NCBI RefSeq assembly: GCF_006345805.1
Contig: NC_042999.1
Location: 6,820,001-6,884,000 of the forward strand
DNA length: 64,000 bases
From: Octopus sinensis
Lineage: Eukaryota
Direction: 5' to 3'
Below, piece by piece: positions 4,700 to 63,976 of the stretch (positions within the stretch are counted from its first letter, which is position 1; every line of letters begins with the position of its first letter). The translations under genes and the position numbers were made by a program. The notes under the pieces are model-generated. The model saw nothing but the letters and a program-made list of their open reading frames with translations. It was not told the DNA's origin and made no database searches.

Positions 4700-5100
4700 T
4701 TTTTTTTTATTAGGAGCACTCCGTCGGTTACGACGACGAGGGTTCCGGTTGATCCGAATCAACGGAATAGCCTGCTCGTGAAATTAACGTGTAAGTGGCT
4801 GAGCACTCCACAGACACGTGTGCCCTTAATGTAGTTCTCGGGGATATTCAGCGTGGCACAGAGAGTGACAAGGCCGGCCGGCTCTTTGAAATACAGGTAC
4901 AACAGAAACAGGAAGTAAGAGTGAGAGAAAGTTGTGGTGAAAGAGTACAGCAGGGATCACCACCATCCCCTGCCGGAGCCTCGTGAAGCTTTTAGGTGTT
5001 TTCGCTCAATAAATACTCACAACGCCCGGTCTGGGAATCGAAACCGCGATCCTATGACCGCGAGTCCGCTGCCCTAACCACTGGGCCATTGCGCCTCCAC
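4700..5100 (-). mobile_element. tRNA-derived SINE family C
   Basis: Minus head GTGGAGGCGCAATGGCCCAGTGGTTAGGGCAGCGGACTCGCGG...GGTTTCGATTCC (A and B boxes); homologous copy at 28265-28627; 3' half shared with 41453-41775. Confidence 0.85.
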
Positions 5101-6907: not shown

Positions 6908-7275
6908 GTGCTGGATCATAGATATAGCATGCCCAGCTGACAACAAGGTATGCGATAAGGAAGAAAGAAAAGTCGAGAGATATGACTGGTTAGCTTGGGA
7001 AGTTAAGCAGTTGTGGTGGATGAAAAGGTAGCAGTAGTACCACTAATTGTCGGAGCCCTGGGAACAGTGAGCAAAAATCTCGAGAAGTACGTGGAACAAA
7101 TAGGGGCTGCAATAAGGGTGGAGCACTTGCAGAAAACAGCACCGCTTGGAATCGCTCGAATACTCCGGAAGGTGCTCGAAAAATAAGAGGTGTTACCTTA
7201 GTTCACTGGTAGTGGGCAGCTGACACTGTAATATATCTCCAGCGTTAGAAGCTGTGCAAAGGCAATGATTAAATA
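6905..7275 (+). mobile_element. R4/Dong-like 3' end (distinct subfamily)
   Basis: IDIACPADNKVCDKEERKVERYDWLAWEVKQLWWMK / VAVVPLIVGALGTVSKNLEKY...LQKTAPLGIARILRKVLEK*; between (AAT)n tracts. Confidence 0.82.
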
Positions 7276-7278
7276 ATG

Positions 7279-7324
<46 letters not shown>

Positions 7325-7730
7325 GGCGCAGGTGTGGCTGTGTGGTAAGTAGCTTGTTATCCAACCACATGGTTCCGGGTTCAGTCCCACTGCGTGGCAT
7401 CTTGGGCAAGTGTCTTCTGCTATAGTCCCGGGCCGACCAATGCCTTGTGGATTTGGTAGACAGAAACTGAAAGAAGCCTGTCGTATATATGTATATATAT
7501 ATATATATTTATATGTGTGTGTATGTCTTTGTGTGTCTGTGTTTGTCCCCCTAGCATTGCTTGACAACCGATGCTGGTGTGTTTACGTCCCCGTAACTTA
7601 GCGGTTCGGCAAAAGAGACCGATAGAATAAGTACTGGGCTTACAAAGAATAAGATTTGCTCGACTAAAGGCGGTGCTCCAGCATGGCCGCAGTCAAATGA
7701 CTGAAACAAGTAAAAGAGTAAAGAGTAAAG
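7325..7730 (+). mobile_element. SINE family A, full length
   Basis: Same A/B-box head, internal TA/TG tract and GAGTAAA tail as the other A copies. Confidence 0.9.
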
Positions 7731-10844: not shown

Positions 10845-11690
10845 ATGATACAAGGCTTGCAGTTGTCAGGGGAGGGAGCTAGTCGATTACATCAATCCGA
10901 GTGCTCAATAGGTACTTATTTTATCGATCCCGAAAGGACGAAAGGCAAAGTTAACGTCGGCAACATTTGAACTCAGAACATAAAGAACCTGAGAGAGAAG
11001 TCGATGAAATAATTGTTTTGAATGCTGGCACAAGGTAGGACTTTTAGGTGGTGGGGAGGATTGTCGATAACGTCGACCCCAGTACATGACTGGTTCGTAT
11101 TCAGTTGATCTTGAAACAATGAATGGCAAAGTTGAGCTCGGTAGAATTTGAACTCAGAACACAAAGACGGACGAAATGCTGCGAAGCACTTTGTTCGGCG
11201 TGGTAATGATTCTGTCAGCTCGTCGCCCTTAGAGATAGTTAAAAAAATAATGGTTTCAAAATTTGTCTCAAGGTCAGCAGTGTCGAAAAAGGGGGAAGTA
11301 GGTTATATCGACTCCCAGAACTCAAATGGTCCTTATTTTATCGACCCCGAAAGGATGAGAGGTAAAGTCTACATCGGCAGAATTTGAACTCAGAACGAAA
11401 AGACAGACGGAATGCTGCTAATCATTTTGTCTGCCGCAGTAACGATTCTCATTTCTTTACTACCCACAAGGGGCTAAACACAGAGGGGGCAAACAAGGAC
11501 AGACAAAGGGATTAAGTCGATTATATCGACCTCAGTGCGAAACTGGTACTTTATTTATCGACCCAGAAGGGATGAAAGGCAAAGTCGACCTCGGCGGAAT
11601 TTGAACTCACAACGTAACGGCAGACGAAATACGGCTACGCATTTCGCCCTGCGTGCTAACGTTTCCGCCAGCTCGCCGCCCTTAGAGATC
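10845..11690 (-). mobile_element. Cluster of SINE family B copies (old B1 copies plus a B2 copy inserted in a B1 head)
   Basis: Repeated GGTCGATAAAATAAGTACC core; B2 copy 11450-11690 joined to AGAATCGTTA of an older B head at 11449/11450. Confidence 0.8.
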
Positions 11691-21182: not shown

Positions 21183-21343
21183 ACTCAAAACACCCATAAT
21201 GATGATGATGATGATGATGATGATGACGATAAAGAAAACGAAAGTGAGAAATGAATCTTCTATGCCTGAGACCGGAACCTCCTTCATTTTTCAATGGCGG
21301 TGCCCCAGCATGGCCACAGCCTCAGAGATGAAACATATATAAG

Positions 21344-21757
21344 GCGGCGAGCTGGCAGAAACGTTAGCACGCCATGTGAAATGCTTTGCGGTATTTCGTC
21401 CGCTGCTGCGTTCTGAGTTCAAATTCCGCCGAGGTCGACTTTGCATTTCATCCTTTCGGGGTCGATTAAATAAGTACCAGTTACGCACTGGGGTCGATAT
21501 AATAGACTTAATCCATGTGTCTGTCCTTGTTTATCCCCTCTGTGTGTAACCCCTTGTGGGTAATAAAGAAATAGGTATTTCGTCTGTCTTTATGTTGTGA
21601 GTTCAAATTCCGCCGAGGTCGACTTTGCCTTTCATCCTTTCGGGGTCGATAAATTAAGTACCAGTTATGCACTGGGGTCGATGTAATCGACTTAATCCGT
21701 TTGTCTGTCCTTGTTTGTCCCCTCTGTATGTAGCCCGTTGTGGGTAATAAGGAAATA
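21344..21757 (+). mobile_element. SINE B array: head + 2 bodies
   Basis: Junction AAAGAAATA|GGTATTTCG at 21573/21574; second body 184 bp. Confidence 0.88.
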
Positions 21758-21929: not shown

Positions 21930-22510
21930 AATATTGATTTCAGGTTTTGGCCAACTATTTCGATGGTGTGGATAAGTCGATTATATCGACCCCAGTGCGT
22001 AACTGGTACTTAATTTATCGACCCCGAAAGGATGAAAGGCAAAGTCGACCTCGGTGAAATTTGAACTCACAACGTAACGGCAGACGAAATACCTATTTCT
22101 TTATTATCCACAAGGGGCTACACACAGAGGGGACAAACAAGGACAGACAAAGAGATTAAGTCGATTACATCGACCCCAGTACGCAACGGGTACTTAATTT
22201 ATCGACCTCGAAAGGGTGAAAGGCAAAGTCGACCTCGGTGAAATTTGAACTCAGAACGTAACGGCAGACGAAATACCTATTTCTTTATTACTCACAAGGG
22301 GCTACACACAGAGGGGACAAACAAGGACAGACGAAAGGATTAAGTCGATTACATCGACCCCAGTGCGTAACTGATATTTAATTAATCAACCCTGAAAGGA
22401 TAAAAGGCAAAGTCGACCTCGGCGGAATTTGATCTCAGAACGTAACGGCAGACGAAATACGGTTACGCATTTCGCCCGGTGTGCTAACGTTTCTGCTAGT
22501 TCGCCGCCCT
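21930..22510 (-). mobile_element. SINE B array: head + 2 B2 bodies + terminal B1-like body
   Basis: Junctions at 22093/22094 and 22277/22278 (184 bp apart). Confidence 0.88.
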
Positions 22511-23344: not shown

Positions 23345-23915
23345 GCGGCAAGCTGGCAGAAACGTTAGCACGCCGGGCGAGATGCTTAGTGGCATTTCGT
23401 CTGCCGCTGCGTTCTGAGTTCAAATTCCGCCCAACGTCGACTTTACCTTTCATCCTTTCCGCGTCGATAAATTAGTACCAGTTACGCACTGGGGTCGATG
23501 TAATCGACTTAATCCGTTTGTCTGTCCTTGTTTGTCTCCTCTGTGTTTAGCCCCTTGTAGGTAGTAAAGAAATAGGTATTTCGTCTGCCGCTACGTTCTG
23601 AGTTCAAATTCCGCCGAGGTCGACTTTACCTTTCATCCTTTCGGGGTCGATAAATGAAGTACCAGTTACACACTGGCGTCGATATAATCGACTTAATACG
23701 TTTGTCTGTCCTTATTTGTCCTCTCTGTGTTTAACCCCTTGTGGGCAGTAAAGAAATAGGTATTTCGTATGTCTTTATGTTCTGAGTTCAAATTCGACTT
23801 TGCCTTTCATCCTTTTGGGGTCGATAAAGTAAGTACAAGTTACATACTGGAGTTGAGCTAATCGACTGGCCCCCTCCCCACCAAAACATTTCGGGCCTTG
23901 TGCCTACAGTAGAAA
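23345..23915 (+). mobile_element. SINE B array: head + 2 B2 bodies + terminal B1 body
   Basis: Junctions at 23574/23575 and 23758/23759 (184 bp apart); last tail GGCCCCCTCCCCACC..GGGCCTTGTGCC. Confidence 0.88.
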
Positions 23916-27867: not shown

Positions 27868-28262
27868 GAGCAGAGTGGCTGTGTGGTAAATAGCTTGCTT
27901 ACCAACCACATGGTTCCGGGTTCAGTCCCACTGCGTGGCACCCTGGGCAAGTGTCTTCTGCTATAGCCCCGGGCCGACCAATGTCTTGTGAGTGGATTTG
28001 GTAGACGGAAACTGAAAGAAGCCTGTCGTATATATATATGTATGTGTGTGTGTGCGTTTGTGTGTCTGTGTTTGTCCCCTTAGCATTGCTTGACAACCGA
28101 TGCTGGTGTGTTTACATCCCCGTAACTTAGCGGTTCGGCAAAAGAGACCGATAGAATAAGTACTGGGCTTACAAAGAATAAGTCCCGGGGTCGATTTGCT
28201 CGACTAAAGGCGGTGCTCCAGCATGGCCGCAGTCAAATGACTGAAACAAGTCAAAGAGTCAA
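27868..28262 (+). mobile_element. SINE family A, near full length
   Basis: Matches the other A copies; directly abuts a family C SINE in the opposite orientation. Confidence 0.9.
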
Positions 28263-28264
28263 AG

Positions 28265-28627
28265 ACGAAGAGGGTTCCACTTGATCCGATCAACAGAACA
28301 GCCTGCTCGTGAAATTAACCTTCAAGTGGTTTAGCACTCCACAGACCCGTGTACCCTTAACGTAGTTTACGGGGGAGATTTATTGTGACACAGAGTGAGA
28401 CAAAGCTGACCCTGTTGAAATACAGGTACAAAAGAAACAGGAAGAAAGAGTGAGAGAAAGTTGCGGTGAAAGAGTACAGCAGTGTTCGCCACCCTCCCCT
28501 GTCGGAGCCTTGTGGAACTTTAGGTGTTTTCGCTCAATAAACATTCACAACGCCCGGTCTGGGAATCGAAACCGCGATCTCACGACCGCGAGTCCGCTGC
28601 CCTTGCCACTGGTCCATTGAGCTTCCA
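28265..28627 (-). mobile_element. SINE family C
   Basis: Homologous to 4700-5100 along its length. Confidence 0.85.
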
Positions 28628-30840: not shown

Positions 30841-31011
30841 GGCGCAGGAGTGGCTGTTTGGTAAGTAGCTTGCTAACCAACCACATGGTTTCGGGTTCAG
30901 TCCCACTGCGTGGCATCTTGGGCAAGTGTCTTCTGCTATAGCCCCGGGCCGACCAATGCCTTGTGAGTGGATTTGGTAGACGGAAACTGAAAGAAGCCTG
31001 TCGTATATATG

Positions 31012-31044
<33 letters not shown>

Positions 31045-31275
31045 CTGTGTTTGTGTGTCTGTGTTTGTCCCCCTAGCATTGCTTGACAACCGATGGTGGT
31101 GTGTTTACGTCCCCGTAACTTAGCGGTTCGGCAAAAGAGACCGATAGAATAAGTACTGGGCTTACAAAAGAATAAGTCCCGGGGTCGAGTTGCTCGACTA
31201 AAGGCGGTGCTCCAGCATGGCCGCAGTCAAATGACTGAAACAAGTAAAAAGAGTAAAAAAAAAAGAGTAAAGAGT
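30841..31275 (+). mobile_element. SINE family A, full length
   Basis: Complete head, internal microsatellite and tail. Confidence 0.92.
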
Positions 31276-31537: not shown

Positions 31538-33251
31538 TCTTTATATATAAAAGTGAAGTTGTGTGAGTGTCTGTCCCCTTCGATTTAGATTCCTAACTAC
31601 TCCTACATTTTGCGGTGCAGTTTAACCAGAACCGGGTATCTTATAGTCGTGATTCATATCGAGCCCTCTGGGTATTAGCGTGCGTCTACGATGAGTCTAC
31701 GATTTTAAAAATAATTTAACATCATTTTTTATTCCATTTTTAATGCATAATTTTTCGTTTGTCGATGGCGGCGGAGTTGGCGTCCATGGTCACACCTGCA
31801 CCTGTTTGCTTCTCCCCCTTCTTCCCTCCCTCATGAAGCTGTGGGGAAGGGAGTTTAAGGAAATCAACGTCGTAATGCGTTGTCAAGGAGACCAGCGTTC
31901 TTTTAGAACAACGACTTCATGGCTTGAAGACACCAAAACAAAAATGGCTAAGAAAGCCCGAATTTATAAGGGAAGTAACTCTCTAAAAATGCTTATATAA
32001 TTATTTCCCTTACAAACCCGAGCAACGCCGGGCGATACTGCTAGTCTTTATATATAAAAGTGTAGTTGTGTGTCTGTCTCCTACGATTTAGATTCCTAAC
32101 TACTCCTACATTTTGCGGTGCAGTTTAACCAGAACCGGGTATCTTATAGTCGTGATTCATATCGAGCCCTTCTGGGTATTAGCGCGCGTCTACGATGGGT
32201 CTACGATGAGTCTACGATTAAAAAAAAAAATTACCATCATTTTTTTCCATTTTAATGCATTTTTTTCGCTATTATATAAGGGAAGTAACTCTCTAAAAAT
32301 ATCTACGATGAGTCAACGATTTAAAAAAAAATTTACCATCATTTTGTTTTCCATTTTTAATGCATTTTTTTGCTAATTTTTGGCTATAACTCTCTAAAAA
32401 TGCTTATATAGTTATTTCCCTTACAAACCCGAGCAACGCCGGGCGATACTGCTAGTCTTTATATATAAAAGTGAAGTTGTGTGTCTGTCTCATACGATTT
32501 AGATTCCTAACTACTTCTACATTTTGCGGTGCAGTTTAACCAGAACCGGGTATCTTATAGTCGTGATTCATATCGAGCCCTTCTGGGTATTAGCGCGCGT
32601 CTACGATGAGTCTACGATTTAAAAAAAATTTACCATCATTTTTTTCCATTTTAATGCATTTTTTCGCTATTATATAAGGGAAGTAACTCTCTAAAAATAT
32701 CTACGATGAGTCAACGATTTAAAAAAAAATTTACCATCATTTTGTTTTCCATTTTAATGCATTTTTTTGCTAATTTTTGGCTATAACTCTCTAAAAATGC
32801 TTATATAGTTATTTCCCTTACAAACCCGAGCAACGCCGGGCGATACTGCTAGTCTTTATATATAAAAGTGAAGTTGTGTGTCTGTCTCATACGATTTAGA
32901 TTCCTAACTACTTCTACATTTTGCGGTGCAGTTTAACCAGAACCGGGTATCTTATAGTCGTGATTCATATCGAGCCCTTCTGGGTATTAGCGCGCGTCTA
33001 CGATGAGTCTACGATTTAAAAAAAAATTTACCATCATTTTTTTCCATTTTAATGCATTTTTTCGCTATTATATAAGGGAAGTAACTCTCTAAAAATGTCT
33101 ACGATGAATCAACGATTTAAAAAAATAATTACCATCATTTTTTTCCCATTTTTAATGCATTCTTTTGCTATTTTTTTGGCTATAACTCTCTAAAAATGGT
33201 TATATAGTTATTTCCCTTACAAACCCGAGCAACGACGGGCGATACTGCTAG
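31538..33251 (+). mobile_element. Four-unit head-to-tail concatemer of a non-autonomous Helitron
   Basis: Units 31538-32044, 32045-32455, 32456-32852, 32853-33251; each starts TCTTTATATATAAAAGTG and ends with a CCCGAGCAACG(C/A)CGGG hairpin then GATACTGCTAG; outer flanks A| and |T. Confidence 0.9.
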
Positions 33252-36200
33252 TTGACTATATAAAATAGTCTGGATAACTCATGTTTGCCAACATGGAAAA
33301 GTCAATCGCCTTCTACTTCAAGAGTATAATACTCAGAATTGCAGGTTCGTATTCCATTGGTTTATATGTGTTATCCAATATATTTCCTTTCGGGGTCGAT
33401 AAATAAAGCACCAGTTTCGCACTGGGGTCTATGTAATCGACTTAATCCCTTTGTCTGTCCTTGTTTGTCCCCTCTATCTTTAGCCCCTTGTGGGTAGTAA
33501 AGAAATATATATATATAATAGTCTATTAGGGCATATAAGGGAGGGTGTAGGTTCGGTTCCCACATTAGCCTATTTCCTATAGTCAGCATACAGTAAATGT
33601 TTATAATTCTATTTTCATAAATAATGAAATTCATTTTAGATATAAGTCAATATTTCATGACTTTTGTACAACTCTTATTTCTTCTTGTTTCAATTTAAGA
33701 ATTTTAATGGTCGTGTGGATAAAATATGAGTCCTTTTACGGCATAAAGAGGTTTTAGTATTGTAAAGAGCGCGGCAGAAAACTCACACATTGTGCCGCTT
33801 AGCAAACTTTTCAACTGTAAACGCACGTCGTGAACTGACATAATCAAAAACCCTATGGACCACACAAACGGTAAAACATTAACGGAGACACAGGCAACGA
33901 CACCACCCACCTACTACCTCCTCTACCATATGTGCGTCAAGGTAACAGCAATGGAAGGTTCTGTATTCGTTTAGTCTTTTAATGGTTTCAGTCACATGAC
34001 TGCAGCCATGCTGGAACACCGCTTTGATTTATTTTCTCTCAGTTCTAATGTCTCTTTATGGCTGGAAGCTGGTCTCTGATTGAGTTTGTGGCATCTGATC
34101 TTCCCTGAGTGCATCCTTGAATGGTTGGCTGGTCCCGTATCGACAATAGTTTATCCAATGATTTTGTTTTTGAATGCTTCAGCAGATGTTCGTTTTATAT
34201 TCCTGATTTCTTTCGGAAGGCAGTTGAACGGTTGAGGACCTCTAAATATCAGACTGGTACAGGAGAGCGATTTTGCTCGTGGCTTCGAAGGTGTCTACGT
34301 TTGCAAGCTGACAGTCTCTGTCTGATCGTGCATTGAAGTTCTCTGCCGCTCTTTGTAATAGGAGAGGTGTGTAGAACTTGGGTGAAAGTACTTTCCAAAT
34401 TGTATGAGTTACAAATAATTGGTAACTAAAAAAATAAAAAGACAATGGAAAGAGCTTCATTAAATGCCAGACCGTTTAACTAATGTGAAGAATAAATACG
34501 AATGATCTTAACCAATCAGTTGATCAGTCTGACATGATATCGTAAATATCAGTCCAGCCCAATAAACATGTTTTCCCCCATGCACGAATTGATATCAGCT
34601 ATTAAATATTCGATAATGGACTCATGGCCATCATCAAAGAATTTATGAGAATCGTACATAATATAAAATAAAAGAAGACGATTTAACTTTTAACGACTGC
34701 AACTTTAACAAGTGCAATAAAACGTTATTAAAACTGAAAATTGTAGAAAAGTAAGAAAAAATTATTCCAGTAAAATGAAAATAATGAAGAGGACGACTAT
34801 TAAAATTTTATGTTGAAAAATGAGCCGAGTTAATTCTTCTGGTGTTTCTGCTCAAATGATTAATCTTGTTTCAAGTCCTTTTACACGAGGGATTAAGGTT
34901 TCATTAAAGCTGAAACATACTTGCTACCTATTAAAGGCAAGAAATGTAGAATTAGAATAGGAAGATAAAGAACTATTCATAGCTTTGCATTTTATTTTGA
35001 TGTTACGAATAAACTGTCATATTGAAAGCAGCGATTGAAGTTTTAAGAAGCAAAAGAAAATGAAAAAGAATTCATATATAAAATAACAAACAAAAACGAA
35101 GAAAAACACAGCAAACGATTTGATAAAATAAATAGCAGAGAAAATGGTGGACATTTTTCTGTAAATGACAAGTCTTATCAGAGTTTAATGTTCGAACTCT
35201 ACTTTTTGTCTGTAATCGAATATCAAAATGAAACACATTATATTTGTAAAAATTAATAAAAATAAAATAACAATAACAATACTAATTTCCCAGCTTCTTT
35301 GAAATTTGGTTTAAAAAATAATATTGCATTAAAAAAACATGTTTATGGTAAAAAAATAATAAATATTACAAAAATCATGTTTTATGGTAATTTTTGCGAA
35401 TATTTTGATTTGAACGTATTTTCTTTGCTGTAGGAAAATATTTTCCTATCTTGATGAAATGAAATAAAATAAAATAGTACAGTAATGAGAGAGAAAGTGA
35501 AGAGGATAGACAAAGAGACAAAGAGACGGAGAGGGAGAGAAACAGACAGAAAGAGTGAGCCACAGAAAACGAGAGAGAGGGAGAGAGAGAGCATAATAGG
35601 ATAGAATAGTTAGTGGAAATAGATAAATAAATAGATGCATAGATAGATAAATGGATAGATAAGTAAGGTGATAGATGATTAGATAAATATATGGATAGAT
35701 AGATAGATAGATAGAGAGGTTGATTGGTAGAAGGAGAAATAGATCGAATGGATGGAAAAATTAAAATTCGAGAGAGTGGGACGGAGGTGTGTGTAGAAAT
35801 TTAATTGACACGTTTGTAGAAATGTGTTTAATTATGAATGTATGTAGGTATGTATGTATGTGTGTGTGTGTGGGGGGGGGTGAGTGAGAGAGACAGGGAG
35901 AGTAAGAAAGAGACAGGCCGAGAAAGAAGGATTAGTTATTTTAATCAAATAATTTGTGCAAGATATTCTCAAGGAATAATTTTTGAGTTTTGAAGAAATT
36001 GCGCCAGAGGAAGAATGGAATCCCTTACAACCCTCTCTGACACTAAGGAATAATCCCCAGACCAGGAGGGACCTGATTGCATGCAGTTAAATAGAGTTCG
36101 TTCAAGATACTTAGGGGCCAGTAGCTCGTGTTAAAGTAGACGCCATATTAAAATGGTGGACATGAAGCATTCTGAGAACTTCCCCAGGGTGAGTGTATAA

Positions 36201-40120: not shown

Positions 40121-40706
40121 TAAGGCGGCGAGCTGGCAGAAACGTTAGCACGCCGGGCGAAATGCGTACCCGTATTTCTGAGTTCAAATTCCGCCGAAGT
40201 CGACTTTGCCTTTCATCCTTTCGAGGTCGATAAATTAAGTACCCGTTACGCACTGGGGTCGATATAATCGACTTAATTTGTTTGTCTGTGCTTGTTTGTC
40301 CCATCTCTGTTTAGCCCCTTGTTTGTAGTAAAGAAATAGGTATTTCGTCTGCCATTACGTTCTGAGTTCAAATTCCGCCGAGGTCGACTTTGCCTTTCAT
40401 CCTTTCGTGGTCGATAATTTAAGTACCAGTTACGCACTGGAGTCGATATAATCGACTTAATCCCTGTGTCTGTCCTTGTTTGTCCCCTCTGTGTGTAGCC
40501 CCTTGTGGGTAGCAAAGAAATAGGTATTTCGTCTGCCGTTACGTTCTGAGTTCAAATTCCGCCGAGGTCGACATTGCCTTTCACCCTTTCGAGGTCGATA
40601 AATTAAGTACCCGTTACGCACTGGGGTCGATATAATCGACTTAATGCCTGTGTCTGTCCTTGTTTGTCCTCTCTGTGTGTAGCCCCTTGTGGGTAGTAAA
40701 GAAATA
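40121..40706 (+). mobile_element. SINE B array: head + 3 B2 bodies, with flanking TSD
   Basis: Junctions 40338/40339 and 40522/40523, end 40706 (184-bp period); TSD GGTGGAGTTTAGTT (40106-40119) / GGTAGAGTTTAGTT (40707-40720). Confidence 0.9.
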
Positions 40707-40769: not shown

Positions 40770-41120
40770 AATACTTTATCCTTTGTTTCAGTCATTAGAC
40801 TGTGGCCATGCTGGGGCACCGCCTTGAAGAGTTTTTAGCTGAATGCCTCGACCCTAGTATTATTGTGTTTTTGTGAAGCCTCGTACTAAATCTATCGGTG
40901 CCTTTTGCCGAAGCGATATGTCACGGGGGCGTAAACACACTAACACGGGTTGTCAAGCTGTGATGGAGGACAAACACGGACACAAAGACAGAGTCACACA
41001 CACACACACACACGCGCGCGCGCGTATGCGGCGGGCTTCTTTTAGTTTCTGCCTACCAAATCCACTCAGAAAGCTATGGTCGGCCTGAAGCTATAGTAGA
41101 AGGCATATACTCAAGGTTCC
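40770..41120 (-). mobile_element. Older, headless SINE family A copy
   Basis: Plus strand TTTCAGTCATTAGACTGTGGCCATGCTGGGGCACCGCC ... GGGCTTCTTTTAGTTTCTGCCTACCAAATCC. Confidence 0.75.
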
Positions 41121-41452: not shown

Positions 41453-41775
41453 AAAGACTCCGCCGGTTACGACGACGAGGGTCCCAGCTGATACGATCAA
41501 CGGAACAGCTTGCTCGTGAAATTAACGTGCAAATGGCTGAGCATTCCTCAGACACGTGTACCCTTAACGTAGTTCTCGGGGATAATCAGCGTGACACAGA
41601 GAGTGACAAGGCTGACCCTTTGAAATACAAGTACAACTCAATTTTGCCAGCTGAGTGGACTGGAGCAACGTGAAATAAAGTGTCTTGCTCAAGGACACAA
41701 CGCGTCGCCGGGAATCGAACTCACAACCTTACGATCATGAGCCGAATGCCCTAACCACTAAGCCACGCGCCCTCC
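41453..41775 (-). mobile_element. SINE family C variant with CORE/V-like central domain
   Basis: tRNA head GGAGGGCGCGTGGCTTAGTGGTTAGGGCATTCGG...GAGTTCGATTCC, then GTGTCCTTGAGCAAGACACTTT; 3' half shared with 4700-4900. Confidence 0.82.
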
Positions 41776-41956
41776 ATATATATATATATATATGAATGTA
41801 TGTATGTTCGCACCCAGGCAATATGTGATGTGAATTTAGATTTATTTATTTATGTATCATACGTTTAGCATCAGCAGTAGTCGAAACTAGTATTCGTTTT
41901 GCACTCGTCGTATTCGTTTCATTACCTACCTACCTACATACGTACATACCTACCAC

Positions 41957-42043
<87 letters not shown>

Positions 42044-42058
42044 CTCTCTCTCTATCTA

Positions 42059-42095
<37 letters not shown>

Positions 42096-42099
42096 CTAT

Positions 42100-45066
42100 C
42101 TTGGTTTGCCCTCAAGAGAGCAGTAAAAGCAGAAGCGATTAGGTACAGCAAAGCACTAGCCATAGATAGAAATAGAGTAGAGGGTGAGCTAGTTAAGAAG
42201 CTAGAAGAGGCAATTAGAAGCGGCATCGCATCCGACGTTTTGGCGGCGAGGTTGGCCCTCGACCAACACTTCAACGCCAAACACGAAGGATGTGCTGTCA
42301 GAGCTAGGATGCGTGCTCTAAGGAACGAAGGTGTTGGAGCCGCGAGAGAGGCCCGGTGGCAGAGGCGCAACAAGGCAACAAAGCCACCATTCGGTCCCTG
42401 GTAGATGAACAGGGGCGCGAATTGCTCGAGCCAAGTAAAATGTGTGAGGCCTTTCAGCAGCATTTTGCCCGACTGTTCGGAACGAGTGGAGGGCAAGAAC
42501 GTAGGGTGGACTTCAGTGCCTACCTACATAGCCTACCACGACTCTCGACAAGAAAGGCAGGGTGCTGCGAAGGTGCCATCACGGCGGCGGAAGTGCAGAA
42601 GCGATGGCAGAATGCTCGAGGGACAAATCACCGGGTTTGGATGGTCTAGCCTACGAGCTTTACAATTGTATGCCAGACTTGTTTGGAGATCTCTTGGCGG
42701 CGGTGTACTGCAACTGGCAGCAAAACGGGAGCATTCCTGGTTTTGTGAGCCGAGGAGCCGTAACACTGCTGAAGAAAGATCTAAACAAAGGAAATGTAAT
42801 AGATAACTTTAGGCCCATCACTCTGCTTAATGCAGACTTGAAAATTTTGGCCAAGGTGCTAGCCAAGAGGTTGGCGCTTGTCATCGAGAAACTGGTCGAC
42901 AAGGCGCAAACGTGCGCCGTGCCAGGCCGGACCATCCATGACAACCTCCATCTCATGCGCTACACCATAGACAGGGTAGTTAACGAACCTGGCATGGGTG
43001 GGGCCCTGATCAACTTGGATCAATCGAAAGCCTTTGATAGGGTAGACCATCGATACTTGGAGGCAGTCCTGAGAGCGGCTGGTTTCGGTCCCGTCTTCCG
43101 CGGCTGGATAGCTGCCTTGTACAGAGGCATCCGTTCGGTAATTCGCGTAAATGGACATCTATCGAGACCTTTCGACATTGCACGTTCGGTCCGTCAGGGA
43201 TGCCCCCTCTCGGCGCTTCTATACGTATTGACTCTTGAGCCACTACTGCGGAAGCTGGCGACTCTGAGGGGCATCCCGCGAGAATTGGGATGCGGGACGA
43301 GCGTGTCTGCATACGCGGACGACGTCACCGTCATAGTGTCTACCCACGAGCACATCGAGCTGGTCGGCGAGACACTGAAAAACTACGAAGCGGTGACAGG
43401 AGCGAAAATCAACCGGGAAAAGTCAGTGGGCTTGCGACTAGGCACCTGGAGAAGCAAGCCCATGCCGTCCACCAGCGCCTCCGTCTGGGGACGCTGGACC
43501 GACGGCCCGGTTGAGTTGCTCGGGGTCTGGTTTGGTCCGGACCTCCAAGTGGAGAAGAACTGGAACGAGATAACGAGTAGGGTGGTCACTCTCGCCCGGC
43601 AATGGGCCGAGAGGAAACTGTCCCTAAAAGGTCGAGCGGAGGTGGCGAACACGTACATCGCGTCCGTCATCTACTACCGCCTGACCGTCGTACCTTGTCC
43701 CGACCCTACCATCACCAAACTACAACGCATTCTCTTTCGCTTCTTGTGGAAAGGATGCGTCCCGATGGTCAGGCGATCCATTTGCTCTCAACACCCGTTA
43801 AAAGGAGGGCTGGGCATGCCGTGGTTGATGATGCGCAGATACGCGCTGAGACTGCGACATCTCTGGCTCTATGTAGACGACGGTGAACAGGTGTGGTCGC
43901 CGTTTGTGAGGCACGCTTTCCCGCAGCTCGTCTCCATGACCGAACTGCAGTCGTGGATCAAAAAGAGGCCGAGGAAGGGCGAATGGCACCGCGAGTGTCG
44001 CGTTGCTCTCAAGCAACTCTGCCGTCCTGGGTCGACCTTAAGTGACTTCAACACAACCATAGCATTCTATAGGGGTTTAGTGGAGGGGAGGTACGACGAC
44101 GAGCTCGGGGCGAACCTGGACGTCGACGAGGAGTACCTGACCCCCTGTTCAGGACGACTTTCGGGCCAGGGCCCATGGACAACTTCCAGAGATCCCTGGC
44201 CTGGCAGTGCTACCGAGAAGCGCTACCCGTTCGGGATAAGCTCTACAGACACGGCTCGAGAAACACGGGCCGACCTGCCCGAGGCGGTCAGAGCGACGAA
44301 ACCGTTCTGCACGCACTCGTTCAGTGTCCAACAATTTCCGACCTGTGGGCTTATGTCGAACAACTGCTGTCACGTGTGGGACGAGTCGGTTTATCAGCTG
44401 AGTCTATCGTCAATATTGTCACGCCTCCTTCCTTCAAACGGGAAGGAAGAGCTATTTTCATCATCCTTGTGGCTATGGCGAAAGAATGTATCTGGTGGAC
44501 GCGTCTGAAAGGATTGGAGACAAACACTTTCCTCTCTAGTCAATCTCTCATCAACTTCTTCAAGTACCACTTGAAAAGGAAAGTGAGAGTAGAGAGGCAA
44601 GTTTTGTCTAGCGAATGTTTTAAAAAAAGATGGGTGAATGTAGCAAGAATGGCACGTATGAATGACGAAGCCACCTTGAGCATAATCCTATGAACCCAGA
44701 AATTGAAAACAGAGATTTGCTTATTTGCAAAAAAAAAAAAAAAAAAAAAAAGAAATATAAAATGTGACTTCATTGACCGAGGTTACCGTGGTCTTTTCCG
44801 TAGGCTTTTCTTTCCACGGGTAAACCTCACCTGTCCTCCCCTTTACACTTCATATTGACATTTCTGTGATAACGATCCCTATTGATCAATTTTTTTTCCT
44901 CTCACCCCTTTTTTTAACCCCCCCTTTTTTGTCCTCTTTCTCTCCTTTTACGATCCCTTTTGATCGAAACTCCCCCCTTTCCCTTTTTTTTAAACCTTCA
45001 AAAGAAAAGCTCTACCTTGTAATTTGTTCTATCTGTGTGCAGCCCTGTGTGGCTAATAAAGAAACA
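42100..45066 (+). mobile_element. 5'-truncated Tx1/L1-clade LINE (ORF2 remnant + 3' UTR)
   Basis: RT ORF followed by a T/C-rich UTR ending CAGCCCTGTGTGGCTAATAAAGAAAC; (TCTA)n on both sides. Confidence 0.92.
42102..44693 (+). pseudogene. LINE ORF2 (linker + reverse transcriptase + C-terminal zinc knuckle), frameshifted, endonuclease missing
   Basis: KSPGLDG, NFRPITLLNADLKILAKVLAKRL, LDQSKAFDRVDH, VRQGCPLS, AYADDV, LGVWF, ETVLHALVQC; frame changes near 42356, 42590, 44140 and 44270. Confidence 0.92.
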
Positions 45067-45131
<65 letters not shown>

Positions 45132-45136
45132 CTCCT

Positions 45137-45198
<62 letters not shown>

Positions 45199-46229
45199 CT
45201 TCCTTTTCTCTCTCTCTCTTGCCTTTTCTATCTCTATATGTGTCAATGAAATATATGCCCACGTTTTTATATGATATTCCCACATTCATCGACCCCCTCC
45301 ATCATAAATACAATCATCCACAATTCCATCCACCTTTGTAATAATGAAGGCAAAACACAGAAATGAAATCGTCGACAAAAAAGGTGGAGGACGTCATCAT
45401 AAATTGCGCTGCTAAAAATTTGTGCAGCGAACGGAAATATTTATATATGCCTTGATATGGTAAAATACTTCAATCGTTTGATGGCAACTGCGACCAAAGA
45501 AAATATTAAAAGATCAAATATTTTAACATGGTGTATCGTGAAAATTACATTGATGCATAAAAAATGTGATATTATGGAAGTTACTTTTATAAATTTAGAA
45601 TTAAATTGATGTTCAAAAATTTTACTGATTGTCAGAAAGAGAAAGAAGATAGAGAGATGTCTAAACGTCGTAGCTATTAAATGTGATGAATGGATGCTTA
45701 AACATTGACAGGCGGAGCTCTGCAACATTTTACGATTTACAATTGTGAGCGTTTTTCTTTGCTTACGTCATCGAAAACACTAAGCGAAAAACAAACATAA
45801 AAAAAACCCACCCAACATCACAGCATCTCCGCTCTTCTGTGGATATATGAAAGGAAAATCTCTCTGAAAGATGCTCAAAACTGTAACGGAGAAATTACAT
45901 GTTCAGACTTTTATCAGTTCCTCAACAGCCGAAGGTGTGGTTACGTGGAAAGATGTTTGTTTGCAAACCACATGTTTCAGGGTTCCGTCCTTGTGCGTGG
46001 AACTTTGGTCAATGTCATCTACTATAACTTCGGGTTGACCAAAGCCTTGTAGGTAGATTTGGTAGACAGACACTAAAAAGGAACCCTTCATATATATATA
46101 TATGGTTTATAACTTATCATCTAAATTACGCAAAAATGAAAATAACACTGACATCTCATTTTAACTTATGTATTTGCCAAAATTGCATTAAAATATTTTG
46201 AAATGATAAAGGTTAAAGTTATTCAATAA

Positions 46230-47343: not shown

Positions 47344-47883
47344 TATACATATACATGTGTGTGCGTGTGTGCGTGTGTTTGTATGCGTGATTGTCCACCC
47401 ACCACCGCTTGACAACCGGTGTTGACATGTTCACGTCCTCATAACTTAGCGTTTCGGCAAAACACTCAATAAAACAAATAACAGGCTTGACGAAAAGGAA
47501 AAAGTAATAGCTACTAGGGTCATATCTTCCCACAAAAAATATTCAAGGCGGTGCTCCAGCATTGCCGCAGTCTAATGACTGAATCAAAAGGTAAAAAAGG
47601 TATTATCTTCCTATCGATCACCCTCTGGTTTACCTTCGATTGGTCTTCGTATGTTTGATTAGTTGAAATAAATCGATCGCTGTCAATTTAGGGTTGGTAT
47701 TGATTCCGGTGACATCACACAGTCATTGATTGTCGCCCATTTACTGCGAGGCGGGGAAAGTCGATATTTTGACGGCTAAAAATTGTAACACTTGAATTAC
47801 TCTCAAAGGTTTGGGCCGTGACTTTTCTTTGATGTTTTTGTTTTTAACTTTCATTTGCTGTAGATTATTATTGATTTTTGCTG

Positions 47884-47906
47884 TCATCATCTTCATCATC
47901 ATCATC

Positions 47907-47973
<67 letters not shown>

Positions 47974-48016
47974 CCATCATCACCACCATCATCATCACCA
48001 TCACCATCATCATCAC

Positions 48017-48075
<59 letters not shown>

Positions 48076-48091
48076 CCATAATCACCATCAC

Positions 48092-48124
<33 letters not shown>

Positions 48125-48125
48125 T
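47884..48125. repeat. (CAT)n/(CAC) trinucleotide tract
   Basis: Directly visible. Confidence 0.95.
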
Positions 48126-48134
48126 ATAATAGAA

Positions 48135-48330
48135 AGGCAAGGCGAGCTGACAGAATCGTTAGCACGGTGGGCGAAAAGGCTTGGCGGTATTAAGCCCGTC
48201 GCTACGTTCAAATTTGACTTTACCTTTCATACTTTCGGGGTCGATAAATTAAGTACCAGTGAAATACTGAGGTCGTTGTAATTGATTTGCCTCCTCCTCC
48301 AAAATTTCAGGCCTTGTGCCTATAGCAGAA
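48135..48330 (+). mobile_element. SINE B1 copy
   Basis: AAGGCAAGGCGAGCTGACAGAATCGTTAGC head; B1 tail CCTCCTCCAAAATTTCAGGCCTTGTGCC. Confidence 0.8.
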
Positions 48331-48413
48331 AGGTTTATTATCGTTATTATTATTGAGTGAGAGAGCAGTGACATTGGGGTAAAATATACGAAGCCCAGTA
48401 CACCCAGTATAAA

Positions 48414-49110
48414 GATGAAGGTGAGAGTAGAGAGGGAAGTTTTGTCTTGTGAATGTTTCAGAAAAGATGGGTGAATGTAGCAAGGATACCTATTTCTTTA
48501 TTACCCACAAGGGGCTAAACACAGAGGGGACAAACAAGGACAGACATAGGTATTAAGTCGATTACATCGACTCCAGTGCGTAACTGGTACTTAATTTATC
48601 GACCCCGAAAGGATGAAAGGCAAAGTCGACCTCGGTGGAATTTGAACTCACAACGTAACGCAAACGAAATACCGCTAAGCATTTCGCCCGGCGTTCTAAC
48701 GTTTCTGCTAGCTCGCCGCCTTTGTAGCAAGGATACCACGTGAGAATGACGGAGCCAGTTTGAACATAATCCTATGAACAAAAAGAAAAAAAAAACGAAA
48801 GGAAAAAAGAAACCCACTTACTGTAATGTGTTTTCCTTTTGAATGACTCTATTGCCCAAGGTTCCCGTAGTCTTTTCCGTAGGCTTTTCTATCCACGGAC
48901 AAACCTAATCTGTTTTCCCTTTTTACATTGACATTTCTATGATACACGATCCCTATTGATCGTCCCCACCTTTTTTCTTTTTTTTTCACGAATCCTTTTC
49001 ATCGGATTTCGACCCCTTTTTTTCTTCCCCTCTTCTTCCCAAGAAGAAAAGCTCTACTTTGTATTTTGTCCCGTCCGTGTTCAGCCCTGCGTGGCCAATA
49101 AAGAAATCTA
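48414..49110 (+). mobile_element. Second, diverged Tx1-like LINE 3' end, interrupted by a SINE B2
   Basis: Aligns to 44575-45066 (KVRVER.V..ECF..RWVNVAR and UTR); ends CAGCCCTGCGTGGCCAATAAAGAAATCTA. Confidence 0.85.
48491..48722 (-). mobile_element. Full-length monomeric SINE B2 with 15-bp TSD
   Basis: TGTAGCAAGGATACC at 48476-48490 and 48723-48737. Confidence 0.93.
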
Positions 49111-49454: not shown

Positions 49455-49543
<89 letters not shown>

Positions 49544-49561
49544 ATAATGATGATGATAATA

Positions 49562-50144: not shown

Positions 50145-50307
50145 TAATAATAATAATCCTTTCTACTATAGGTACAAGGCCTGAAGTCTGGGGGTAGGGG
50201 GTTAGTCGATTATTTAGGCAATAACAAAGTTGAAACTAATTTTACCATAATTTCAAAAATGTAAAGGAAAAGGGTTCTGTTACAAAATAAATCGCAAGGA
50301 GAGAGAA

Positions 50308-54884: not shown

Positions 54885-55700
54885 TTTTCTACTCTAGGCA
54901 CAAGGCCCGAAATCTTTTTGGGGAAGGCCAGTCAATTAGATCTAGCCCAGTACGCAATTGGTACTTAATTTATCGTGCCCGAAAGGATGAAAAGCAAAGA
55001 AGACCTCGGCGGAATTTGAACTCAGAATGTAAAGACAGTCGAAATACCTATTTCTTTATTACCCACAAGGGGCTAACACAGAGGGGACAAACAAGGACAG
55101 ACATAGGTATTAAGTCGATTACATCGACCCCAGTGCGTAACTGGTACTTAATTTATCGACCCCGAAAGGATGAAAGGCAAAGTCGACCTCGGCGGAATTT
55201 GAACTCGGAACGTAACGACAGACGAAATACCGCTAAGCATTTCGCCCGGCGTGCTAACGATTCTGCTAGTTCGCCGCTAACGCTTCTCTCCTACTCTAGG
55301 CACAAAGCCCGAAATTTTTGGGGAGGGGGCCAGTAGATTAAACCGACTCTAGTACGCAACTGGTACTTAATTTATCGATCCCGAAAGGATGAAAGGCGAA
55401 GTGGACTTCGGCGGAATTTGAACTCAGAACGTGAAGACAGACAAAAATATCGCTAAGCATTTCGTCCAGCGTGCTAACGTTTCTTATTTCTTTACTGCCC
55501 CCAAGGGGCTACACACAGAGGCGACAAACAAGGACAGACAAACGGATTAAGTGCGTAACTGGTACGTTTTTAATCGACTTCGAAAAGATGATCGGCAAAG
55601 TCGACCTCGGCGGAATTTGAACTCAGAACGTAGCGGCAGACGAAATACGACTACGTATTTCGCCCGGCGTGCTAACGCTTCTGGCAGCTCGCCGCCTCAA
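54885..55700 (-). mobile_element. Two composite SINE B arrays (B2 inserted into B1)
   Basis: Junctions AAAGAAATA|GGTATTTCG at 55048/55049 and AAAGAAATA|AGAAACGTT at 55484/55485; terminal bodies carry B1 tails. Confidence 0.85.
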
Positions 55701-59547: not shown

Positions 59548-59580
59548 TACTATATATATATATATATATCTATCTATCTA

Positions 59581-59629
<49 letters not shown>

Positions 59630-59631
<2 letters not shown>

Positions 59632-59807
59632 TTTTTTCCTCTCCCCCTTTTTAACTCCCCCCTTTTTTTGTCCTCTTTCTCTCCTTTTACGATCCCTTTT
59701 GATCGAAACTCCCCCTCCTTTTTTTTTTTTTTTAAACCTTCAAAAGAAAAGCTCTACCTTGTATTTGTTCTATCTGTGTGCAGCCCTGTGTGGCTAATAA
59801 AGAAACA

Positions 59808-59808
<1 letters not shown>
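59630..59808 (+). mobile_element. Tx1-like LINE 3' UTR-only copy
   Basis: Near-identical to ~44890-45066; (TCTA)n on both sides. Confidence 0.9.
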
Positions 59809-60112
<304 letters not shown>

Positions 60113-61424: not shown

Positions 61425-61652
61425 TTTTTCTTTTTTAGTCAATTGACTGTGGCAATGCTAGAGCATCGCCTTGAGTCAAGGAGATCGATCCCAGGATTTA
61501 TTCTTTGTAAGCCCAGTACTTATTCTATCGGTCTTTTGCAGAACTGCTAAGTTACGGGGACGTAAACACGCCAGCTTCGGTTGTCCAGCGATGTTGGAGG
61601 ACAAACACAGACACACAAACACACACACACACAAATACACACACATACACAC

Positions 61653-61683
<31 letters not shown>

Positions 61684-61832
61684 TACATATATACGACGGG
61701 CTCTTTCCGTTTCCGTCTACCAAATCCACTCACAAAGCTTTGGTCGGCCCGAGGCTATGGTAGAAGACACTTACCAAAGTGCCACGCAGTGGGACTGAAC
61801 CCAGGACCATGTGGTTGGTAAGCAAGCTACTA
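61425..61832 (-). mobile_element. SINE family A, 5' end slightly truncated
   Basis: Matches the family A body and tail. Confidence 0.85.
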
Positions 61833-63520: not shown

Positions 63521-63976
63521 AACTGCCAGCTCAGTCTAAATTTGTGTATTGTCCTATAGTATTTATATGAGATCGTGGTATGAAGAGAGTATTTGAACTC
63601 AGATCTTAGAGAACCGGAAAAGATGCCGCTAAGCGTGTTGTGTGGCGTGCAAACGACTCTGTCATCCTTTTAGATGCTTCAGTAAATTTCGAAGGCCGAG
63701 TCCCTCTTCTTCCAACTGTATTTGTACTACGATGCTTCAGTAGAACAGTACGGTTTCAATAGAACAATAAGAACAGTTCTATCATACGCTTATGGCTTTT
63801 TTTCGATGTTTTGTGTCCCCAATATTTTGTATTGTCCCATTCTGTGTATAGCCCCTTGTGGGTAATAAAAAATGAGAACAATAGGAACAGTACGGTTTTA
63901 ATAGAGTAAAACACAAATTGAGACTGTCACCAAATGAAAGCCATCACAGAGAAATGATTTTTATTCCCTTACTAAA

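Follow-up and report, generated by a model that had tools for sequence, protein, structure and literature searches.

Short interspersed nuclear elements (SINEs) account for ∼12% of octopus genomes, roughly 40% of their repeat content (PMC13282606, PMC8967140), and discussion of their expansion centres on an RTE element (PMC9115989). This expansion is a defining feature of the octopus lineage, and the literature that we searched does not name the long interspersed nuclear element (LINE) that drove it. The question is raised by a stretch of 64,000 nucleotides from Octopus sinensis (contig NC_042999.1, positions 6,820,001 to 6,884,000 of the forward strand; hereafter the window), in which a copy of a SINE that we call B2 sits inside a LINE with a similar 3′ end. 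Which LINE machinery copies B2? The answer reached here is that B2 is most likely copied by L1/Tx1-type machinery, a known kind of partnership that is apparently undescribed for these elements: the full-text literature searched holds no description of a partner LINE for an octopus SINE, and curated Repbase or Dfam entries may already note one.

B2 and a LINE family end in the same 3′ module

The reverse complement of positions 48491-48534 (TTTGTCCCCTCTGTGTTTAGCCCCTTGTGGGTAATAAAGAAATA), the end of the B2 copy, aligns without gaps to positions 49065-49108 (TTTGTCCCGTCCGTGTTCAGCCCTGCGTGGCCAATAAAGAAATC), the end of the LINE that surrounds it (LINE b). The score of 35/44 given in a preliminary description of the locus was reproduced exactly, and the similarity ends sharply 5′ of this block. 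Alignment of the B2 consensus and a 44-mer scan of the whole window also bore out the wider claim of a homologous 3′-terminal module common to B2 and the LINE family. Thus, 44-mers matching either tail at 28 or more positions are found only at the 3′ ends of SINE and LINE copies, and the B2 consensus reaches local alignment scores of 40-60 with the LINE 3′ ends, compared with a mean of 17 (sd 2.5, maximum 30) for shuffled sequences. The homology covers B2 positions 186-233 (∼48 nt) and the last 44-52 nt of the LINEs, and it extends to the 3′ terminus in both. A chance likeness of two A/T- and G/T-rich ends might be argued from the shortness of the match (44 nt) and from the low-complexity AATAAAGAAA that it includes. 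However, nothing elsewhere in the 64 kb reaches 28/44, the z-score against shuffles is ∼9-17, and the match recurs across independent loci and species, which leaves this reading a negligible probability: the match between the B2 and LINE tails is not due to chance.

The shared module terminates all B2 copies, all copies of the LINE family in the window (at 45066, 59807 and 49108) and an element at 63777-63875 (LINE c). It also ends related LINEs of Argonauta hians (L003:8261, L003:8650 and L005:11191) and a LINE on a JGI contig (L006:2019). The tail is part of the LINE proper, since it is present in independent copies and closes the 3′ untranslated region (3′UTR) of LINE a1, the copy with reverse transcriptase (RT) and zf-RVT domains, 373 bp after the stop of its second open reading frame (ORF2; stop at 44693, end …CTGTGTGCAGCCCTGTGTGGCTAATAAAGAAACA). 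All SINE and LINE copies terminate in …AAAGAAAT(A/C) and, with no poly(A), pass straight into target sequence. The poly(A) ends by which relaxed, poly(A)-dependent L1-type mobilisation is recognised are therefore found on neither the LINE nor the SINE.

At the locus itself, the B2 copy is 95.7% identical to the window B2 consensus. Its head is tRNA-like and contains a B-box-like GAGTTCAAATTCC; the body is shared, and the 3′ module, which resembles that of the LINE, is the top match of covariance model R1 (63.4 bits). Positions 48417-48487 and 48723-49106 correspond, in the same order, to 44579-45064 of LINE a1 (the first segment at 89% to 44579-44650, the 3′ part of LINE b to 44639-45064; the flanks of the SINE are homologous to 44579-44695). 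This colinearity of the flanks indicates that B2 interrupts a single 5′-truncated LINE, ∼40 bp upstream of its ORF2 stop. The insertion of B2 into a LINE with a 15-bp target site duplication (TSD), as first described, is confirmed by a perfect duplication and by contiguous LINE sequence on both sides. A long (ATC)n/(CAT)n microsatellite (47868-48130) and an (AGT)n tract (49455-49545) border this cluster of LINE b and SINEs.

The shared tail contains a covarying hairpin

The tails have a common fold, an interrupted hairpin made of UCU/AGA, UGU(U)/(A)AUA and a 4-bp G/C top stem, with a CUUGU loop and a few unpaired terminal bases; the very end of the module, (A)AUAAAGAAAU(A/C), follows the hairpin. 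B2 and LINE c have the top stem GCCC/GGGU, the Argonauta LINE and SINE GGCC/GGCU, the JGI LINE GGCC/GGCC, and LINE a AGCC/GGCU with a 6-nt loop (AGCC-CUGUGU-GGCU). In the window SINEs B1a and B1b, the top stem is (A/G)GGC/GCCU and UGGC/GCCA, respectively.

Single folds are weak; the structural case rests on comparison. We used an alignment (A2) of 31 tails picked by homology and not by pairing. The four top pairs are paired at 90.3%, compared with 73.6% after shuffling (none of 500 shuffles attains 90.3%) and at most 49% when the alignment is slid, and the covariation score is 0.39 versus 0.12 and at most 0.10, respectively. At pair 28-38, 20 rows have G-C and 7 have C-G; at pair 29-37, 22 have C-G and 6 have G-C. 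The covariance model derived from A2 has 29 matches in the window at E ≤0.01, each marking the 3′ terminus of a SINE or a LINE; a 5′-truncated B1a at 50158-50213 (minus strand), followed by a long (ATT)n tract, was detected by the covariance model alone. Extreme 3′ homology, a tail contiguous with ORF2 and the 3′UTR, and a stem-loop with compensatory changes are among the features by which a SINE/LINE pair is recognised, and these three are present here. A GC stem-loop had originally been proposed for both tails; it stands for B2 (GCCC-CUUGU-GGGU) but holds only weakly for LINE b, where a 3-bp GCC/GGC stem is not the minimum-energy fold (z ∼0).

Two distant LINE relatives (L010 and L011, 46-49% amino acid identity) have no match to the tail covariance model. 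Near the end of the 3′UTR of the 49% relative (L010:∼7230-7290), the sequence …TTTAGGCCTCGTGCCATATTTG… offers a look-alike GGC-CUCGU-GCC hairpin that the model does not score.

The LINE family and its clade

The window is eukaryotic, AT-rich and repeat-dense, and its only long domain-bearing ORFs encode RT and zf-RVT; other ORFs of at least 130 amino acids in the window contain no RT or endonuclease domain. LINE a1 has at least three frameshifts and lacks an endonuclease domain because it is 5′-truncated. The closest relatives of the window RT/zf-RVT ORFs are found in Argonauta hians and other cephalopod assemblies, which points to an octopod-like genome, and the C-terminal ORF has five homologues in the protein collection searched; a metagenome scan for relatives of this C-terminus gave none that was confirmed. 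Full-length relatives (P0005 and P0011) carry Exo_endo_phos, RVT_1 and zf-RVT domains, downstream of an ORF1 of ∼705 amino acids with a weak CCHC knuckle. The APE endonuclease, RT and C-terminal zinc-binding domain of the L1 superfamily are all represented, the window copy providing RT and zf-RVT and the full-length relatives the endonuclease. Against PDB, P0005 matches human L1 ORF2p with 240 bits (E 3e-70) over endonuclease and RT, and R2 with 91 bits (E 4e-25); many invertebrate and fish proteins (1145-1300 amino acids) outscore human L1, at 340-500 bits. On the strength of its domains and scores, the LINE family is assigned to the L1 superfamily.

Target-specific insertion, a Tx1-type trait, is seen in both LINE a copies, which have (TATC)n on both sides (41930-42103 and 45067-45200 for a1; 59570-59630 and 59808-60000 for a2). 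This implies (TATC)n-specific integration. The related LINEs of the JGI contig (L006:2019) and of Argonauta (L005, ∼11191) end directly before (ATT)n. Microsatellite-specific insertion is typical of several Tx1-clade families (PMC4494074), and L1-Tx1, the sole L1-type class listed among active octopus LINEs (PMC13282606), has also been reported in octopus elsewhere (PMC8967140). Given its behaviour, namely microsatellite targeting and the lack of poly(A), Tx1-like is a well-motivated label for the family. Domains, PDB scores and (TATC)n flanks thus agree with the initial view of a LINE that belongs to the L1 superfamily, chooses specific targets and does without poly(A).

In the limpet Patella caerulea, more than 10 consecutive genes annotated on one contig (KAK6191799-KAK6191823) are relatives of the LINE ORF2, which suggests tandem or clustered site-specific insertions.

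Targets, ages and self-arrays

The 3′ end of B2 (…AAAGAAATA) is directly followed by GGTAT at two of seven non-SINE targets (48491 and 62126) and by GGTAG at 40706; GGTAT has a background frequency of 0.0008 per position. GGTAT also stands at the junction of every B2 insertion into SINE position 51 (GGTATTTCG). The remaining B2 junctions are followed by TATA (twice), ATTAC and (G)AGAA (SINE position 18). As for the LINEs, TATC(TATC)n follows LINE a twice and TATTTC follows LINE b. TSDs measure 14 and 15 bp for B2, 15 bp for LINE c and 12-13 bp for the Argonauta SINE, or 12-16 bp for SINE and LINE from few cases. Ages are compatible with joint activity only in so far as two LINE copies can be compared: B2 copies are 90-96% identical to their consensus (∼6% off), and LINE a1 and a2 are 93% identical to each other.

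B2 forms four head-to-tail arrays with a period of 184 bp (Table 1), in which one full B2 is followed by units of positions 51-233, the junction always joining AAATA to GGTATTTCG. One of them (40122-40706) is bordered as a whole by a 14-bp TSD. Identity between units of an array is 91.3%, compared with 90.2% for any two copies. Recent local duplication was considered as the origin of the arrays and rejected on this ground, and the same observation indicates that the arrays date from the amplification period. We suggest that B2 would insert into its own GGTAT (position 50/51) and that the 5′ end of the new cDNA would join through homology with the first 50 nt of the resident copy, leaving positions 1-233 followed by 51-233. 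A sequence-preferring endonuclease, gained with the tail, had been put forward to account for RGWA targets and self-arrays. A strong preference for GGTAT, present at position 51 of B2 itself, can explain the 184-bp arrays, but RGWA is a loose description of data that consist of GGTAT, TAT and (G)AGAA.

In two places, B2 is followed by B1 from SINE position 18 (11450-11683 with 11296-11449; 55485-55697 with 55332-55484, minus strand), and the upstream flank of these pairs resembles a B1 flank. This suggests that B2 inserted into B1 and that the 5′ junction was resolved by homology. The arrays recall the tandem dimers that site-preferring transposable elements form by double insertion (McGurk and Barbash, bioRxiv 10.1101/158386), in which repeated insertion at the same internal site produces head-to-tail arrays and satellite seeds. 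However, the octopus target lies inside the SINE itself (position 51), and the 5′ junction is apparently resolved by homology, with clean 184-bp units as the outcome. In Argonauta, positions L005:4994-5357 hold a tandem array (period ∼157 bp, junction GAAATC followed by TATTTGTCC) of another short element with the same tail, and self-arrays therefore occur there as well.

A second species, Argonauta hians

Loci L003 and L005 of Argonauta hians contain a SINE whose body is homologous to that of B2 (74% over B2 positions 99-232) and which ends in …CTGTGTTCGGCCCTTGTGGCTAATAGAGAAATC. This tail is ∼97% identical to the 5′-truncated LINE end at L003:8650. The tail at L005:11859 likewise belongs to a SINE. 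The tail of the SINE goes with that of the LINE in the same genome, as the stem is GGCC/GGCU in Argonauta and GCCC/GGGU in the window. Moreover, of the 16 Argonauta SINE and LINE tails whose 3′ junction was scored, 15 are followed by TAT (in two of them one base after the junction), and TAT lies inside the sole clear Argonauta TSD (TATTTCAAGGAA). No other single line of evidence speaks as strongly for a real partnership as these data from Argonauta.

The probable LINE subfamily behind B2 and the change from B1

The top tail match to B2 in the window is LINE c, with 43/47 identities and a score of 60. It contains an identical TAGCCCCTTGTGGGTAATAAA, a B2-type hairpin and, upstream of the tail, the LINE-type motif TTGTATTGTCCC. 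LINE c has no ORF and is probably a LINE fragment; no longer relatives of it were found. LINE b, with its 80% match at 49065-49108, had been taken as the candidate partner of B2, but neither this copy nor its subfamily is the closest one, LINE c being better. The driver of B2 would thus be a LINE subfamily with a GCCC/GGGU stem like that of LINE c, and not the copy at 49065-49108. A metagenome scan with the B2-type tail pattern gave 0 matches. Three B2-tail matches in a scan of genome contigs were discarded as chance, since they lie in bacterial genes and have no SINE body.

B1a and B1b resemble B2 over head and body (72-85%) and differ from it in the sequence between body and hairpin. Within the SINE head, the B-box-like motif (GAGTTCAAATTCC) lies at positions 73-85 and an A-box-like TAGCACGCCGG can be picked out, both by eye. 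The initial inference of a tail acquisition holds in spirit, but the idea that B1 lacked this type of tail, and that B2 was the first to acquire a Tx1 tail, proved wrong: B1a and B1b already end in a CUUGU hairpin with compensated stems (GGGC/GCCU and UGGC/GCCA). (ATT)n follows B1a at 48333 and 50158, as it does the L006 and L005 LINEs, and hairpin and (ATT)n together indicate that B1 was already a client of the same LINE clade. As the supposedly older B1 has the hairpin, the step to B2 was a swap of tails from different subfamilies of a single LINE clade. B2 would have arisen when ∼65 nt on the 3′ side were replaced by those of another subfamily, with a change in target preference too.

Proposed mechanism and competing explanations

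From the observed homology, terminal position, stem covariation, TSDs and target motifs, we infer trans-mobilisation and recognition of the module by a protein. We consider it probable that B2 is a non-autonomous SINE with a pol III-type, tRNA-like head, whose last ∼48 nt derive from the 3′ end of an L1-superfamily, Tx1-like LINE and which is mobilised in trans by that LINE. In this scheme, the LINE ORF2 protein (APE endonuclease, RT, C-terminal zinc-binding domain) would recognise the module on its own RNA in a stringent manner, independently of poly(A), and the same module in trans on the SINE RNA. It would nick a preferred target, before TAT or GGTAT or in (TATC)n/(ATT)n, and target-primed reverse transcription (TPRT) would begin exactly at the end of the module, leaving TSDs of 12-16 bp. 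The stem variants of B1a, B1b, B2 and the Argonauta SINE match different LINE subfamilies, which indicates that SINE tails were repeatedly exchanged or co-evolved with LINE subfamilies. More tentatively, and with less confidence than we place in the partnership itself, one can imagine that octopod SINE expansion was driven by target-specific Tx1-type LINEs reading a co-evolving CUUGU hairpin. SINE subfamilies would switch tails after new LINE subfamilies, each switch altering the target; the switch to B2 would have turned the internal GGTAT (position 51) into a target, and homology-assisted 5′ joining during TPRT would yield clean 184-bp arrays, a route from SINE to satellite.

Several observations weigh against the proposed partnership. 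No LINE copy was found with both an ORF and an exact B2-type tail (…TAGCCCCTTGTGGGTAATAAAGAAATA), the best being the non-coding LINE c, and the coding copies a and b match B2 at only ∼80%. In the register of B2, the top stem of LINE a/b is broken (pair 2) or shifted by one base, and the GGTAT of B2 junctions has only TAT in common with the TATC and TATT of LINE a and b. The hairpin is short and of ordinary folding energy (z −0.03 to −3.9), the lower stems are much less supported than the top stem, poorly so in B1, and since the rows of A2 are related, the compensatory flips represent perhaps two or three independent events. The SINE head is not called a tRNA by ARAGORN or Rfam. The Tx1 label rests on behaviour and on the RepeatMasker labels of other authors, and the sample consists of one 64-kb window and ∼40 kb of Argonauta sequence.

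Some of these points would fit a different history, in which the common tail is merely left over as a relic from an ancient capture, similar without present function, and B2 is mobilised by a LINE of another clade (RTE, CR1 or Dong/R4). Among octopus LINEs, these classes are reported as the most active (PMC13282606, PMC9115989), and the ∼80% match of the ORF-containing LINE copies would suit a relic. However, both types of element carry the module at their exact 3′ end, SINE and LINE tails vary together within each species, target motifs and TSD lengths overlap in the few cases scored, and the window holds no other LINE ORF that could provide a better match, so that we regard a relic as unlikely. 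The module may also have travelled the other way, from SINE to LINE, for example by template switching during reverse transcription. LINE RTs are known to switch templates onto SINE RNA, and SINE copies far outnumber LINE copies in the window (∼25 versus 4). On the other hand, the module is found on every LINE subfamily seen, at 60-77% protein identity, in two species as well as a metagenome contig; the subfamilies each combine a stem variant of their own with LINE-specific sequence upstream (TTGTAT…), and the last ∼48 nt alone are shared, never the SINE body. Such a reverse transfer therefore seems very improbable.

A milder alternative accepts the partnership and places the LINE in another branch of the L1 superfamily. 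The zf-RVT domain is frequent in plant L1-type elements as well, and no named relative bears a TX1 label: the name TX1 is absent from the source names of 10 distant representatives and from a search seeded with a 1304-amino acid relative, and the source labels of distant relatives read only 'hypothetical', 'pol-like' or 'exonuclease III'. Site-specific microsatellite insertion and the absence of poly(A), the long ORF1 of the full-length relatives, the invertebrate and fish elements that are closer than human L1 (340-500 versus 240 bits), and the reports by others of L1-Tx1 as the L1-type class of octopus (PMC13282606, PMC8967140) all speak for Tx1, and we hold a non-Tx1 origin to be rather unlikely.

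Comparison with known SINE/LINE pairs

Tail sharing is textbook knowledge for partners of the L2, CR1 and RTE types, and stringent SINE/LINE pairs with a common 3′ tail are reportedly covered in reviews by Ohshima and Okada. One such stringent pair is UnaSINE1/UnaL2 of the eel (Kajikawa and Okada 2002, cited in PMC3472496). Pairs of this type resemble the octopus elements in the tRNA-like SINE, the LINE-homologous last ∼50 nt, the conserved loop, the covarying stem and the absence of poly(A). However, the known partners are L2, CR1 or RTE elements, whereas the octopus partner is a target-specific member of the L1 superfamily.

Within the L1 superfamily, the only reported cases of tail sharing are those of maize and sorghum SINEs with LINE1-1_ZM and of one Chlamydomonas pair (PMC3472496, PMC3747384). 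In the pairs ZmSINE2/3–LINE1-1_ZM and SINEX-3_CR–L1-1_CR, as here, an L1-type 3′ end of ∼45-50 nt with a hairpin and compensatory changes is shared by the SINE. These are plant and algal pairs with poly(A), whereas the octopus pair is animal, lacks poly(A) and goes to microsatellite or motif targets. For the Tx1 clade, one SINE relationship is documented, that of crocodilian SINEU with Tx1-Mar, and it consists of shared targets without a shared tail (Kojima 2015, PMC4494074). Both systems combine a SINE and a Tx1-type or Tx1-like LINE with a target preference at least partly in common and SINEs that pile up in particular repeats. However, SINEU elements have snRNA-derived heads and poly(A), and no LINE sharing their tail was found, whereas the octopus SINE and LINE share the tail and, in part, the target motif. 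LINE copies embedded in a microsatellite on both sides are also known from the Tx1 families Kibi, (TC)n, and Koshi, (TTC)n, and from crocodilian (TTCC)n/(TTTC)n families (PMC4494074); the octopus-type targets are (TATC)n and (ATT)n, and the likeness is one of behaviour.

What makes the pair interesting is its clade, a hairpin that covaries cleanly, the link between tail and target, and the scale on which SINEs have expanded in octopus. If true, an L1/Tx1-type partnership would name the driver of octopus SINEs and add an animal case of stringent 3′-end recognition in the L1 superfamily. It would also provide a small mutable RNA element (a 4-bp stem and CUUGU loop) for probing the template choice of RT, and a concrete mechanism by which SINEs seed tandem arrays.

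Features and other repeats of the window

The coordinates of the elements discussed are collected in Table 1.

Table 1. Position and character of SINE and LINE features in the window
Feature	Positions	Strand	Description
SINE B2 copy	48491-48722	minus	232-233 bp; base 48723 assignable to SINE or TSD
B2 3′ module	48491-48540	minus	Lower stem, GCCC-CUUGU-GGGU hairpin, then AAUAAAGAAAUA terminus
TSD, left copy	48476-48490		TGTAGCAAGGATACC; 15 bp, perfect; begins GGTAT in SINE orientation
TSD, right copy	48723-48737		Perfect repeat of TGTAGCAAGGATACC
LINE b, 5′ part	48397-48475	plus	ORF2 C-terminus remnant; 5′ limit approximate
LINE b, 3′ part	48738-49108	plus	Final ORF2 codons and ∼335 bp of 3′UTR
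LINE b 3′ tail	49059-49108	plus	…GTGTTCAGCCCTGCGTGGCCAATAAAGAAATC, then TATTTCAT; covariance model 39.3 bits
LINE a1	42104-45066	plus	5′-truncated; RT (PF00078, E 5e-31) and zf-RVT (PF13966)
LINE a1 3′ tail	45017-45066	plus	AAUAAAGAAACA, then (TATC)n; AGCC-CUGUGU-GGCU hairpin
LINE a2	59631-59807	plus	Last ∼177 bp only; 93% identical to a1
LINE c	63777-63875	plus	97-99 bp, 5′-truncated (putative LINE fragment); 15-bp TSD GAACAATARGAACAG
SINE B1a copy	48133-48333	plus	Head and body as B2 (73%); different 3′ module, AGGC-CUUGU-GCCU hairpin and AUAGCAGAAAGG; ATT-rich after
B2 arrays (four)	21341-21757, 21973-22508, 23345-23867, 40122-40706		Head-to-tail, period 184 bp

Other repeats are present in the window. 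An unrelated family of ∼320 bp (68-83% identity, both strands) occurs at 40783-41105 and in ∼15 other places, for example at 701-1020, 7411-7709, 27952-28249, 30927-31243 and 61433-61783. Another dispersed repeat is found at 41457-41637, 4718-4903 and 28264-28431; the neighbouring positions 41700-41765 resemble the reverse complement of a tRNA-derived head (…GGGAATCGAACTC…). Finally, a 397-bp tandem repeat (31976-33252; 3.2 copies, 96% identity) lies just upstream of a 5′-truncated B2 (33385-33507).

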